Shown here: positions 2,135 to 8,488 of the stretch, in pieces
How positions within the stretch are numbered: the first letter of the stretch is position 1
Layout: each line of letters starts with the position of its first letter
NCBI RefSeq assembly: GCF_000143415.4
Contig: NW_003314629.1
Span: 1-8,488, forward strand
DNA from: Selaginella moellendorffii
Taxonomy: Eukaryota; Plantae; Lycopodiophyta
Direction: 5' to 3'
DNA: 8,488 bases
Notes under the pieces: generated by a model
Database searches by the model: none
What the model saw: the letters and a program-made list of their open reading frames with translations, nothing else
Told to the model about the DNA's origin: nothing
Translations under genes and position numbers: made by a program

Positions 2135-2270
2135 TCAAGAGCTCCACTATGCCGCTACTCCATTGTGATCCCTAGGGTAGGGTTGAGTCCCTTACCCTAA
2201 CATGCCTTAATATACCCTTGAGCCTCACTTTGACTGACATTGACCATGTGGTCAAAGCTGGTGCCTAACA
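2135..2270 (-). repeat. 3' LTR (distal ~100 bp missing)
   Basis: 2170-2270 matches 6492-6592 directly (92/101, ungapped). 2135-2167 matches 6252-6284 in inverted orientation (26/33, all differences transitions). Confidence 0.92.
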
Positions 2271-2283
2271 ATTCTTCCCCCCC
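2271..2283 (-). promoter_or_regulatory. Polypurine tract (PPT)
   Basis: Minus strand GGGGGGGAAGAAT immediately precedes TGTTAGG of the 3' LTR. Confidence 0.9.
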
Positions 2284-2343: not shown

Positions 2344-3135
2344 TCAAGCTCCTGGTCCATCTTCCACAGCCGTATACATCAAGGAGGCATTGGGCCCATC
2401 ACTCCGAGATAGTACACCTTTCAATTGGCTGATATAAAATACTGGATGAATTTTAACCCCAGCTGGCAACTGCACTTGATAAGCCGCTTTACCAATGGGC
2501 TCCAGCACTTCATATGGACCAACATATCGATGGGAAAGTTTATCACTCTTCTCTGTCCGTAAAGGCACCAAGGTATTCCACTGCTCACTTGACGGAAAGA
2601 TCACTCGCACAAAGACGAAATCACCCACCTTATATTCCCGGAATTGGTGATGCTCATTGGCAAACTTCTCCTCTCTATCCTGAGCTACTCGCAAATTCTA
2701 TTTGCACACCACTAGAATCTCATCAAGTTTCAAATGCAATCCTAACTCCACCGCTGTTCAAGGATGCCTTCCAAACATGGCAAAGTAAGGATTTAATTTG
2801 GTTCCACTGTGTTTGCTATTGTTGTAAGCAAATTGCACTAACAGAAGATATAGATCCCATTGTCCTTGCCTTTAACCAATGCTACAACGTAGCATATCCT
2901 CCACCACCTGATTCACATGCTCGGTTTACTGATCCGTCTGAGGATGATCTCCAATCAAGAGTTTCAAAGTCACTTACATAGCCTTTTCAAAACTTTTCCA
3001 AAATCCACTGGTGAACTTTGAATCTTGATCACTAATAATGTCCTCCAGCAAACCAAAATCAGGAAAAACCTTCTCCAAGTAAACTACAGTGAAGTCTGAG
3101 GCAATGATAGTCTTCTGAAGAGCCAACAACCACAC
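2344..3135 (-). pseudogene. Integrase core (distal part) and GPY/F C-terminal module
   Basis: VWLLALQKT...FGLLEDIISDQDSKFTSGFWK...HPQTDQ*TEHVNQVVEDMLR...QFAYNNSKHS...KLSHRYVGPYEVLEPIGKAAYQVQLP..VKIHPVFYISQLK, with internal stops. Confidence 0.92.
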
Positions 3136-3381
3136 GGGAAGAACACGTATGAGTTGATTAAGTGCAATTTTTATTGGAGGAATATGAAAACTAATATCCT
3201 CAAGTATTGTAAATCATGCAAGCTTTGTCAGTGGGTTAAGGTGCCACGGGAGAAGTTAGGGGGACTTTTGCAACCTTTACTTATTCCTCAGAGCCATTAG
3301 TGTAGTATCTCTATGGACTTCATCACTTGTTTGCCACAAACATAGAGGCAAAAGAAGCAAGTATAGGTCATATTGGATCGC
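3136..3381 (+). pseudogene. Inverted integrase segment (second half of HHCC Zn finger through first catalytic Asp)
   Basis: Plus-strand frame from 3136, 82 codons with no indel: GKNTYELIKCNFYWRNMKTNILKYCKSCKLCQWVKVPREKLGGLLQPLLIPQSH*CSISMDFITCLPQT*RQKKQV*VILDR. This is exactly the piece missing between minus-strand HD....HFG (ends 3380) and VWLLAL (starts 3135). The ORF track misses it. Confidence 0.95.
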
Positions 3382-5094
3382 CAAAATGACTGGCTTTGGA
3401 CGATCATGATAGTGGAATAAAATTTGAGTAATTAACGCATCCATCTGTGGCAAATATACATGGCCATTGTAATAGAGAATCCCATCCACCAATGAGAAAG
3501 GGGCTTCTATCTAGTCTTGCAAAGAGGCCACCTTAGCATCCTGAGCCTGAGCATACTCAACCAACTACCCAAACTTGCTGACCACCTTACTCAAGTGATG
3601 ACAAAATTGTGTTTGTAATGTCGTCACATAACGAACACGAGATAAAGCATCTACCACCACATTTGATTTCCTGGACGATACTCAATAGGAAACTCCCTAA
3701 AATCCATGAGTTTGACCATCCAACAAGCTTGCCTAGTGTTCAACTCCTTTTGTGTGAAAAGATACACAAGTGGTTTATGATCTTTCAACACCACGAACAT
3801 CATATGTGGAATAGTGTTGCTCCGCGGAATTCAAAGTTCGACTCTCATATGCAATAGGCTGTCCCTCTTGCATGAGAACTCCTCCCAGTGCATAACCACT
3901 CGCATCGCATATCACCTTGTAAAGTTTCGATGGATCAGCAATGCAAAGCATTGGAGTCTCGCTTAACAATCGTTTCAGTGCCACAAAACTCTCCTCTTGT
4001 GGCTTCTTCCACTCGAATGGCATATTTCTTGCGTAACAACTGCATCAAAGGAATAACCACCTCTGCAAACTTATGCTGGAAACATTGGTAGTAATTAGCT
4101 ATACTAAGAAAACTGTGCAACTCGGCCACTATACTCGGTGTAGGCTAATTTTCCACCATAGCCACCTTCCTTGGATCCGTTTTGACACCCTTAGATGTCA
4201 CAATATGGCCTAGATATTCCACCTCCGACTTTGCAAACTCACATTTGCTCTTCTTTGCATAAAGTTTGCTGTCTCGGAGTAATAAAAGAACCTTGCACAA
4301 TGCACCTTATGCTCCTCCATATTCTTGCTAAAAACAAGAATATTGTCCAAGAAAAATCTCCACAAACTCATGAAGATGATGCCCAAATACCTCTGTCATC
4401 AACTGACTAAATGTGGCTGGTGCATTTGTCAAATCAAACAGCATAACTGTAAACTCAAAATGTTCAAAGCTTGTGTTGAATGCCATCTTGGAGATAGATG
4501 CATCATCCATTGCAATCTAATGATATCCACTCCTCAGATCAATCTTGGTAAACAGTCATACTTCACCAAGCTTGTCTAGGATATCATGCACATGTGGCAT
4601 CGACATCTTATCCTTCACTGTCTTCTTGTTCAAAGCGCGGTAGTCAATACACATTCGCATTAAACCGTCCTTCTTCTTCACAAGCAAGACCGAAGCACCA
4701 AATAGAGACTTACTTAGCTGAATAATTCCAAACTTAAGTAACTCCTTGACTTATCGTTGAACTTCTTGCTCCTCCGCATAACTTAACCGAAATGGATGCC
4801 GGTAAATTGGCCGCGTCCTCGACTCCAATGTAATCCCATGCTCCACACCTTGTAATGGAGGCAACTTATGAGGAAGTTCAGATAAAATAACATCAAAAAA
4901 CTTGTCAAGTACATCCCATACTGTTGCTTCTCCCCCACACATGCCTTGGTCCCCCAAGTCACAAACAAACAGCAAGTAACTCGAAAGTGCTTTTCCATTA
5001 TGACAAGCCGCTTCAAAGATGTAGTAGAGAGTAGAACAACTGGTGGTTGAATGCCCTTGTCAAACCACACATCTTTAACACCATCATACTCCAG
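3382..5094 (-). pseudogene. pol: reverse transcriptase, RNase H and integrase N-terminus (frameshifted, with stops)
   Basis: LPP.QGVEHGITL...[22 protein letters not shown]...KIDLRSGYH*I...LTNAPATF...FLDNILVFS (YxDD box decayed to FLDN, 4342-4353)...KSKCEF..EVEYLGHIV...CDASGYALGGVLMQEGQPIAYES...DHKPL...YRPG..NVVVDALSR...ILFHYHD...HFG. Confidence 0.95.
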
Positions 5095-5595
5095 CTAGAC
5101 ACGCTTAATACTCCACTTTATCTTTGAATCCACCTTCACCAACCATGGCATCCCAAAAATGAGATCCACACGATGGATATCCACGAGATAAAAAGTCTCC
5201 AAAAGTGTGGTTTTGCTAACCAACACTTCCAGCTCCTCGACACAAGCATCGAAATGCTGAGCAGAGGTAGTTGCACCTTCCATCATGTATGGAAGAACTC
5301 CATGTATGACCAGGCCATGCTCCGCAACAAACTTTGCCGAAACAAAGTTGTCATCGCTCCCACTATCCAGTAAAATCCACACTAGATCGCCACGGAACAC
5401 ACCCTCTAGCACTAAAGCTGATTCACGAGTATCCTCAAGCTCCATCTTGTTCCATACACAGTTGAGTTGACGAGCAATGATCAAAAGTCTCTTCCTCCGA
5501 CCAGAATGGTCGTTCTCGTCATCCTCACACTGCAAAGTTTGCAACTTTTTAGTATCTAACTTACTGTGAGTAGAAGATTGGCCATTCTTCTGGTC
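5095..5595 (-). pseudogene. Retroviral-type aspartic protease
   Basis: ILLDSGSDDNFVS active-site motif and DLIFGMPWL motif. In frame with gag across a single TAG at 5596-5598. Confidence 0.92.
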
Positions 5596-6250
5596 CTACT
5601 GCTTGTTCTTCAACTGTGGACAATCAGCCTTGTAGTGTCCAAGTTCGCCACAATGATGACAACTTTGTCTATAATTCTTCATAAAGAACTTCTGCTTCTT
5701 AGACCCCTTTGCATCCGAAGTAGTCACCACTGACTTCAACTTGTGATGCTTGTTCCCATCCTTGTGTCCACGGCGATCATCACAACGATTCTCGACAAAA
5801 GGACTCCGCGAACGCTTGCGAGACTTGTGCTTGTCATTGTCAAGTCGACGAGCTGCATCAAAGAGCTCCTCCAAACTCTTTGTAGGCTGAGAATGACGCA
5901 AGTGGTGCCGCATGCTCTCACTATGTAGGCCATCAATGAAGTAGGACTTGTTCTGATCTGGATCCTTCGTTGGAACACGACTAATCAAGCGAGTAAGCTT
6001 CTTAATAAAGTCCCTGAGTGTCATTTTCCCTCGCTGGAAATGTTGAAGTTCTGTACGAGCATTCTTCACGTCGTAATGAGGGGCAAAATGTAAACGGAAA
6101 GCAGCCTCAAACTCATCCATGGTAGACACTGGTGGTTTCTTATCCGCAACACAGGACTCCTCAAGCCAATTCCACCATCGAAAACCCACATCACACAAAA
6201 CCATTGGAATAATCACTAAAGCCTCTGCATCTAGAGTTCCCCTAACAGCC
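5596..6250 (-). pseudogene. Gag (capsid-like domain plus CCHC zinc knuckle), N-terminus detached by inversion
   Basis: AVRGTLDAEALVIIPMVL...FRWW...FEAAFRLHF...ARTELQHFQRG...FIDGL; CHHCGELGHYKADC at 5620-5661. The first ~29 residues of ORF 5596-6336 are antisense LTR sequence, not Gag. Confidence 0.9.
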
Positions 6251-6251
6251 A

Positions 6252-6382
6252 CACAGTGGAGTGGTGGTGCAGTGGAGCTTTTGAGGTAGCTCGGGGGTGG
6301 TTGGGTGGTGAGGAACCTCAAGAGGTGGTGTAGCATAGTTTAGGGCGACTAGATTTCTGTCTTTTTGCGCCGGATCATAACA
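6252..6382 (+). repeat. Distal part of the 5' LTR, inverted
   Basis: Begins with the inverted match to 2135-2167 and ends ...GGATCATAACA, a canonical LTR end, 1 nt before the PBS. Confidence 0.88.
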
Positions 6383-6383
6383 T

Positions 6384-6394
6384 TGGTATCAGAG
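6384..6394 (+). promoter_or_regulatory. Primer-binding site complementary to the tRNA-iMet 3' end (now antisense to gag-pol)
   Basis: TGGTATCAGAG directly after ...ACA-T. Confidence 0.92.
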
Positions 6395-6406
6395 GAGTTA
6401 GTTGCG

Positions 6407-6491
6407 ATGGTCGACCAAGCTAAACGCTGGAATCCTATTGCCGATGATGGTGCCGATGAAGCTGTGGAGATTTGGACCATTCAAGTTCAAG
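6407..6491 (+). pseudogene. Original Gag N-terminus, inverted
   Basis: ATG 12 nt after the PBS: MVDQAKRWNPIADDGADEAVEIWTIQVQ(A). Resembles the xxxWxxxxE helix of retrotransposon Gag and would join AVRGTLDAE... if re-inverted. Confidence 0.8.
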
Positions 6492-6592
6492 CCCTAGGGT
6501 AGGGTTGAGTCCTTTACCTTAACATGCTTTAATATACCCTTGAGCCTCCCTTTGACCGACGTTGACCACGTGGTCAAAGCTGGCACCTAACA
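6492..6592 (-). repeat. Proximal (U3-side) part of the 5' LTR with promoter motifs
   Basis: Direct repeat of 2170-2270. Contains a TATATTAA box (6529-6536, minus) and the palindrome TTGACCACGTGGTCAA (6562-6577). Confidence 0.93.
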
Positions 6593-6824
6593 TCTTCATA
6601 ATTCTGTCTTTCTGCGTGCTCCATCCATAAATGCCTGCATCCAAATCCCCGAGACATCACTTGTATACCTTTGTGCATCTCCTTGCTATCTATCCTCCTT
6701 GTGCTTCTAGAACCACTAGCCTATTCCTCTTGCTAATGGTTTTATAGAAATACCTCCATGCTTTTGAACAATCTCTGATTTTGGGCGGCACTCTTGCAGG
6801 CTCTTTCAGCAATGTGACCATCTC

Positions 6825-7280: not shown

Positions 7281-8488
7281 TCAAATAGCATCTTTATGAA
7301 CAAACGTAGCCTCCACCAACCATGAATCAACGAAAGCCAAGATGTTATCTTTATCGATAACACCAAGCAAAGCCTTTGTGCCAAGATCCACTTTCATTTT
7401 CTTTTCACCTCTTCTAATAGAAGCTCGACTGCTGCACGCTTCCTCCCTCAAATAAAGGTTACCTAACTGCTTCTTCAGATTAACATCTGTAGAAACCAAG
7501 AGTTTAATGCACCCATTACGAGCTAACTCTCGAAGAGAGTCAGCACCAGTAACTTCAGTTGGGGTCGGTGTACTCTTGTGTTGGAAAAGCTTGTTCAGAT
7601 CCAAGGTATAAAAAGCATTATTGACTTCACCCTACAACAAAAGAAAAAAGTCCAATTACATCAAAAGATGACATGTTGCTTACCTGGTAAAGCGCCTTAC
7701 TTGTCTTAACTTGCACAAGAACGGGAACAAGGATCATCGGGTGTTGCTGCTGCGAGGTGGAGCAAGCAGTGTCAGTCTCTGAGACTTGTCCTTGACCACC
7801 TCCATCTCCCTCCGACATGTCTAGAAAAAACAAGGCGTCTGGCCCAAATCCGGATTCTCCTGTCCATAAAACGGATGGGAAAATGTCCCTCTCCTTGACA
7901 GCATTGATGTACTCCTGCAGAGTATATCTTGATGCGTTGACATCATACACATCTGAGCCTTTACTATGCTCGTGTCTCATCTGCGCCACTTGTTCACTGT
8001 GGATCCTTGGTTTCACAAGCTTCGCTCTTCTAGTGTAGATTTCTGGAATCTCTAACTCATGTGAAGTGACCGTGTACACACCATCTTGAAGAAACCTAGA
8101 GATCAAATTTGCAGGTTGCATCCCGTCCATTGCGTTTGCAATCATCTCCACTGCAATCATTTCGTATCCGTGCCCAACTCCGCTGCTACTTGACTGGGCG
8201 TTATAACAATAAGCAGTATCCGCTATACTCGATAGGCCTGCTGGTTCGCCGACAGTTAAATAGTGCCACAAAGAATGGAGAACCAGAGGCTCCTCAATAC
8301 GCAATAGAACGTTCGCTGTGTCTGACTCGTCCTTCCAAGAATCCAAATCTTGCATTTCAAGCGTCCGACGGCCATCCAACCTCGCTAGTCCGTATTGAAT
8401 TAAACTCAAGCTGGGGTTCTTGACAGCAACATACGTAGCATTCAATCCATAGAACTGATGGAAGAGTATAAGACTCAGTTTTTCGAGA
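7281..8488 (-). CDS. 3' part of a putative Crinkler(CR)-type NTPase+REase protein, PD-(D/E)xK nuclease domain; exons >8487-7684 and 7631-7281
   Basis: Frame is open from the window edge (LEKLSLILFHQFYGLNAT...). Motifs LIQYGLAR, IEEPLVL, GHGYE, GPDALFFL (GPD 7837-7845), VPVLVQVK (QVK 7705-7713), AFYTLD, IKLLVS, VIDKDNILAF match the pattern I recall for fungal/plant CR-REase proteins. Splicing joins ORFs 7627-8445 and 7281-7604 in frame with no premature stop. Confidence 0.72.
7632..7683 (-). other. 52-nt phase-0 spliceosomal intron
   Basis: CAG|GTAAGC...TTTTGTTGTAG|GGT GAA gives ...KALYQ-GEVNNAFYTLDLNK. Strong donor and pyrimidine-rich acceptor. Confidence 0.85.

Follow-up and report, generated by a model that had tools for sequence, protein, structure and literature searches.

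The 8,488-nucleotide stretch of Selaginella moellendorffii contig NW_003314629.1 analysed here (the window) held a decayed Ty3/gypsy retrotransposon with long terminal repeats (LTRs), lying on the minus strand from about 6592 to 2135, in which two short pieces were turned round in place. Flip 1 (3136–3381) lay within the integrase coding region, and flip 2 (6250–6491) spanned the distal part of the 5′ LTR, the primer-binding site and the start of gag. Both probably arose after the element had integrated, as two local two-break inversions rejoined by end joining, each of them inactivating. An original prediction made from the letters of this DNA had proposed two in-place inversions with two breakpoints each, which was borne out for flip 1 by a strand switch in tblastn comparisons and for flip 2 by LTR continuity together with the primer-binding site. 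Its further claims, that few bases were lost, that no long inverted repeats flank the pieces and that either flip alone would be lethal to the element, also held, as set out below.

Flip 1 within the integrase

Intact integrase relatives for comparison were obtained by one search of a library of 1.84 billion representatives with the flipped integrase piece, which had returned no relatives in a word-index protein search within its allowed length range. The closest of them, P0003, was 60% identical and matched the window by tblastn in three blocks: residues 14–108 at 3669→3394 on the minus strand (E 9e-24), residues 114–189 at 3136→3363 on the plus strand (E 8e-26) and residues 203–351 at 2802→2404 on the minus strand again (E 3e-48). 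The same minus-plus-minus order, colinear with the protein, was found in all nine relatives compared with the window, P0003 included. Save for this one strand switch the tblastn matches across pol were strictly colinear, which counts in favour of a flip in place. Positions 24–57 of the Pfam domain Integrase_H2C2 likewise matched the plus-strand translation of 3100–3297 (E 8e-9). On the minus strand the integrase frame (..ILFHYHDRP-KPVIL) ran down to 3382 and all similarity was gone beyond, with the remaining zinc-finger residues and the beginning of the catalytic core on the plus strand (GKNTYELIKCNFYWRNMKTNILKYCKSCKLCQ..ISMDFIT..VILDR).

The boundaries of flip 1 can slide by 1 nt, giving a retained length of 244–246 bp. 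Losses at its joints were read from an alignment in which the three integrase pieces of the window were set as separate rows against five relatives, no un-flipped sequence being assembled. One residue (about 3 nt) was absent where the piece ending in the HH half of the zinc finger meets the flipped piece, and four residues (about 12 nt), corresponding to a conserved ‘LTKx’ after VxVDR, were absent where the flipped piece meets its continuation (VWLLALQKTIIASD..). The flipped piece holds 3 stop codons, so it has decayed like the remainder of the element.

Flip 2 at the 5′ LTR, primer-binding site and gag start

The only long repeat in the window was a 101-bp direct repeat (2170–2270 and 6492–6592). 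Both copies open with TGTTAGG on the minus strand, and the polypurine tract GGGGGGGAAGAAT stands just before the left copy; they are therefore the proximal parts of the two LTRs. The LTR termini were TGTTA..TAACA, with a TG start and a CA end. The 5′ LTR was about 234 bp long, and the 3′ LTR lost recognisable similarity to it after about 136 bp.

The proximal 101 bp of the 3′ LTR ran unbroken into 2169→2135. The 5′ LTR counterpart of 2135–2167 did not adjoin 6492 and lay inverted at 6252–6284 (33 nt, 79%). Reflection about 6250..6491 moves 6252–6284 to 6457–6489, with an offset of 2 nt that the 3′ LTR has too; flip 2 therefore neither gained nor lost a base on the LTR side. Its retained length was 240–242 bp with an ambiguity of 1 nt. 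Read on the plus strand, the flipped piece comprised the distal 133 bp of the 5′ LTR (6250–6382) ending in ..GGATCATAACA (..CATAACA), a single T, the primer-binding site TGGTATCAGAGG (6384–6395), and the gag ATG at 6407 with 28 codons up to the junction. The primer-binding site thus sat one base past the LTR end, on the flipped piece, and this was its sole match in the window; we take TGGTATCAGAGG to be the classic plant initiator-methionine tRNA (tRNA-iMet) primer-binding site. On the minus strand the gag frame resumed from 6249, off by +1/−2 nt, so about 2 nt may have been lost on the gag side, unless an unrelated indel intervened. The argument for flip 2 is therefore carried by LTR continuity and the primer-binding site, since the gag N-terminus had no relatives for comparison: none were found for gag in the word-index protein search within its allowed length range.

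A TATA-like TATATTAAA was present in the 5′ LTR at 6528–6536, 44 nt upstream of the flip 2 junction. The junction 6491|6492 is adjoined by a perfect 8-bp palindrome, CCCTAGGG (6492–6499), an LTR sequence present in the 3′ LTR as well. We considered whether this palindrome blurs the right boundary of flip 2 and ruled this out, as the LTR alignment fixes the reflection axis to within 1 nt. Also ruled out was a reading of plus-strand 6250–6491 as part of a second, oppositely oriented copy, as the stretch fills exactly the coordinates missing from the minus-strand copy. At the other breakpoint, a heptamer CACAGTG was seen at 6252–6258, 1–2 nt inside the flip; both it and the palindrome probably stand at the flip 2 breakpoints by chance.

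Scars at the four junctions

All four breakpoints were internal to the element, at LTR position 101/102, at gag codon 29 and at two sites in the integrase. Each flip had a microhomology of 1 nt, and neither showed a duplication, foreign DNA or filler longer than 1 nt. The joint losses, about 3 and 12 nt at flip 1 and 0 and about 2 nt at flip 2, agree with the few lost bases of the original prediction. There were no inverted repeats of at least 20 nt near any junction and none longer than 6 nt within 40 nt of any junction, the longest match of 6 nt being at chance level. The only motif common to the four breakpoints was a chance 6-mer, CCACAC, and no further flips were seen from gag to integrase by Pfam or tblastn.

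Several routes to an inversion do not fit these scars. Inversion mediated by inverted repeats, through non-allelic homologous recombination or a hairpin, was rejected on the longest inverted match of only 6 nt within 40 nt of the junctions, and autointegration was rejected on breakpoints that lie at LTR position 101/102, in gag and twice in the integrase, not at the LTR termini. Nor do the breakpoint positions fit self-priming of minus-strand strong-stop DNA or recombination between inverted copies.

Origin of the flips

The proposed sequence of events is that a Ty3/gypsy element integrated normally and would later have been damaged as chromosomal DNA. Two local two-break events would each have freed a piece of about 245 bp, which non-homologous end joining (NHEJ) would have put back the other way round at the same site, with 0–12 nt trimmed per joint. 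Flip 1 breaks the zinc finger of the integrase between its HH and CC halves and parts the first catalytic Asp from the second. Flip 2 cuts the promoter half of the LTR off from the LTR end, the primer-binding site and the start of gag. Many stops and frameshifts show that the copy has decayed further. Two double-strand breaks repaired by classical NHEJ give rise to inversions in plants, both induced and spontaneous and often with deletions at the junctions (PMC10893937), and repair of this kind is the most likely source of scars that combine in-place reversal, no duplication or filler, trimming of 0–12 nt and microhomology of 1 nt.

No flip is present at the homologous position of the 3′ LTR, so flip 2 would have arisen after both LTRs were made. 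Taken together with the fact that no functional element could carry either arrangement, this makes the flips private damage to an integrated copy and not a trait of the family. We infer that the two events took place after integration and independently of each other.

Three points weigh against this account. By its scars, end joining is here indistinguishable from replication-based template switching, which leaves similar ones; the flips are documented in one sequence only; and two flips lie within 3.4 kb with lengths 2–6 bp apart, a coincidence of about 1% by our own estimate, which assumes sizes evenly spread on a log scale over what fits in a 4.4-kb element.

The strongest competitor, which we nevertheless regard as unlikely, is replication-based template switching of the fork stalling and template switching (FoSTeS) or microhomology-mediated break-induced replication (MMBIR) type, in which a stalled strand copies about 245 nt backwards off the complementary template and then switches back. 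Both flips could then stem from one low-processivity repair episode, their length scale being that of the single-stranded region at the fork, which would suit two flips similar in size and close together, and the 1 nt of microhomology per junction pair. Template switching and MMBIR have moreover been proposed as mechanisms for microinversions (PMC8755829; PMC11566620). However, near-perfect inverted repeats flank the documented microinversions of this kind, which measure 17–33 nt (PMC8755829), whereas the flips here span about 245 bp and lack such repeats. There were also no duplications or templated insertions, and a net 12 and 3 nt are missing at the joints. The absence of these marks (flanking near-perfect inverted repeats, templated insertions, duplications) from the junctions speaks against the documented class of microinversions only, and not against template switching as such.

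A still less probable explanation is an artefact of assembly, cloning or amplification, with the flips absent from the plant chromosome. One sequence is the sole source, and exact look-ups of junction-spanning open reading frames (ORFs) were blank in public collections: five ORFs of the window, including one that crosses the junction 6249|6250, were absent from the protein collection. A scan of metagenome contigs with a 21-mer conserved in both LTRs gave 0 matches. Against an artefact, the window contains no Ns and no inverted overlaps that an assembler could mis-join, and the flipped pieces have decayed like the rest, flip 1 holding stop codons and flip 2 differing at 21% of its checked LTR bases. 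If the sequence comes, as we infer, from the Sanger assembly of S. moellendorffii, single reads would also span a whole flip with both its junctions, and mis-assembly would be unlikely.

Near-equal size of the flips

The original prediction had taken the similar sizes as a sign of a length-constrained or ‘scrambling’ process, and here it found no support. A dedicated or chromatin-templated process that flips about 245 bp in silenced transposons, for instance by paired cuts at nucleosome-linker spacing or as a ‘scrambling’ form of inactivation, would account for retained lengths of 244–246 and 240–242 bp, but it is highly improbable, given only two events, original break spacings that differ more than the retained lengths (up to 261 versus 242–244 bp), unlike junction scars (a loss of 15 nt in flip 1 against about 2 nt in flip 2) and no motif common to the four breakpoints beyond a chance 6-mer. 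With the lost bases counted, the original spacings were about 246–261 bp for flip 1 and 242–244 bp for flip 2. The match consists of two events in a finding that was selected because of the match, and it is most likely a coincidence, or at most reflects a mild preference for short break spacings.

We consider it very doubtful that in-place flips of silenced transposon DNA have a preferred length of about 240–260 bp set by chromatin or replication in Selaginella. Were it so, breaks might come in pairs spaced by one nucleosome and its linkers, or template switches might be confined to the single-stranded stretch of a fork; both flips would come from one process, and a genome-wide census would show a sharp size peak. 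A preferred flip length in such a census would point to a spacing of DNA breaks imposed by chromatin or replication. An old LTR retrotransposon serves well as a ruler here, its known gene order and paired LTRs fixing the breakpoints and the lost bases.

A role of the copy as a silencing trigger is speculative. A transcript initiated within the 5′ LTR would read the flipped piece, with its repeat and unique 5′ (R/U5) LTR regions, primer-binding site and gag part, in antisense. The copy contains no inverted duplicate able to fold by itself into double-stranded RNA or a hairpin, and protein searches found no close family member as a target, the best relative being 60% identical.

Layout of the element and its surroundings

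The domain order gag, protease, reverse transcriptase, RNase H and integrase on the minus strand, as seen by Pfam and colinear tblastn matches, was regular apart from the two flips (Table 1). The SH3_Tf2-1 domain of the integrase C-terminus was placed by Pfam at 2697→2347. A chromodomain, the mark of the chromovirus clade, was not found there by Pfam; SH3_Tf2-1 was the only domain in 2347–2697, and the frame ends about 25 residues further on. In the ORF listing the coding region was split into many stop-free pieces, so the copy is long dead. An LTR identity of about 91% and the many stops show the element to be old.

Table 1. Features of the flipped retrotransposon, in element order from the 5′ LTR (window positions)
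Feature	Position	Strand	Evidence and remarks
5′ LTR, proximal 101 bp	6492..6592	−	Direct repeat with 2170–2270, 92/101 identical; starts TGTTAGG
Flip 2	6250..6491	+	Distal 5′ LTR, spacer T, primer-binding site, gag ATG and 28 codons; opposite to element strand
Remaining gag, Retrotrans_gag and CCHC zinc knuckle	5599..6249	−	Pfam PF03732 E 2.5e-12, PF00098 E 1.3e-5
Aspartic protease, DSGSD motif	5098..5595	−	Pfam RVP_2 E 1.6e-9
Reverse transcriptase and RNase H, interrupted by several stops/frameshifts	3669..4975	−	Pfam RVT_1 fragments, RT_RNaseH_2 E 3e-20; colinear tblastn P0106, P0086, P0089
Integrase N-terminus to HH half of zinc finger (..LFHYHDRP + KPVIL)	3382..3510	−	P0003 residues 69–108
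Flip 1	3136..3381	+	CC half of integrase zinc finger, catalytic core start with first Asp (SISMDFIT)
Remaining integrase core (..IISDQDSKFTS..) and C-terminal SH3_Tf2-1, frameshifted	2347..3135	−	tblastn P0106, P0089, P0017; Pfam PF24626 E 5e-19; alignment
Polypurine tract GGGGGGGAAGAAT	2271..2283	−	Adjoins 3′ LTR on upstream side; direct reading of sequence
3′ LTR, colinear, unflipped	2135..2270	−	Distal ~70–100 bp absent or unrecognisable

The 5′ flank of the element was GAAGA, and no target-site duplication, 4–6 bp long in Ty3/gypsy elements, could be paired with it, the 3′ end of the element not being placeable. A possible end of the 3′ LTR was noted at ..CCATAAAACA (2108), within the stretch 2040–2134. 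Two plus-strand stretches, 6601–6633 and 2097–2130, are similar to the final ~30 bp of the LTR (TTCTGTCTTTTTGCGCCGGATCATAA); the former is separated by 8 nt from the start of the 5′ LTR, on its outer side, and the latter lies just past the colinear part of the 3′ LTR. Restricted shuffling gave p ~0.004 for 6601–6633 and ~0.008 for 2097–2130, both stretches having been chosen after inspection, and they may be relics of another copy or due to chance. A second flipped distal part, in the 3′ LTR, was considered for 2097–2130 and rejected, the match being weak, plus/plus and at least partly explained by the palindromic core TTTTGCGC/GCGCAAAA.

To the right of the element, the minus strand of 7281–8488 carried ORFs related only to hypothetical proteins of S. 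moellendorffii and without a Pfam match (SELMODRAFT_404915 at 47% identity; SELMODRAFT_406119 at 65–83%, with 83% over 7284–7631). A 472-aa NCBI gene model, P0152, ends at 8191–8487 and extends past the window. The left flank contained a short tandem array at 1858–1905, of three overlapping ~22-nt units at 13 nt spacing (ACCATTGATTGTGA..), and on the minus strand at 493–927 a 144-aa cysteine-rich ORF, which matched nothing in Pfam and had no identical entry in the protein collection.

Comparison with known systems

The element resembles plant Ty3/gypsy (Metaviridae) retrotransposons with a tRNA-iMet primer-binding site in its order of gag (CCHC), protease, reverse transcriptase, RNase H, integrase and SH3 domain, its TG..CA LTRs, its primer-binding site TGGTATCAGAG and its polypurine tract. 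It differs from them in its short LTR (~234 bp), in a gag without detectable relatives and in that no chromodomain was detected. Retroelement copies with an internal inverted segment are also produced by autointegration of retroviruses and retrotransposons (‘inversion circles’) and by twin priming, which gives 5′ inversions in L1. The junctions of autointegration involve LTR tips and a target-site duplication, and twin priming is a process of non-LTR elements in which the 5′ end becomes inverted; the flips share the internal inverted segment with both, but all of their breakpoints are internal. Microinversions between human and chimpanzee, ascribed to template switching or MMBIR, are alike in that a segment is replaced in place by its reverse complement, yet those measure 17–33 nt and are without exception bordered by perfect or near-perfect inverted repeats (PMC8755829), whereas the flips here are about ten times longer and lack them. 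The closest likeness in scars is to two-break inversions by classical NHEJ in plants, spontaneous or made with paired nucleases, which share the in-place reversal, the two junctions, the small deletions, the 0–1 nt of microhomology and the absence of flanking repeats and duplications (PMC10893937). By comparison with these, about 245 bp is at the small end of the usual catalogue and two inversions fall in one 4.4-kb element; each is an event of an ordinary kind, cleanly documented to the base.

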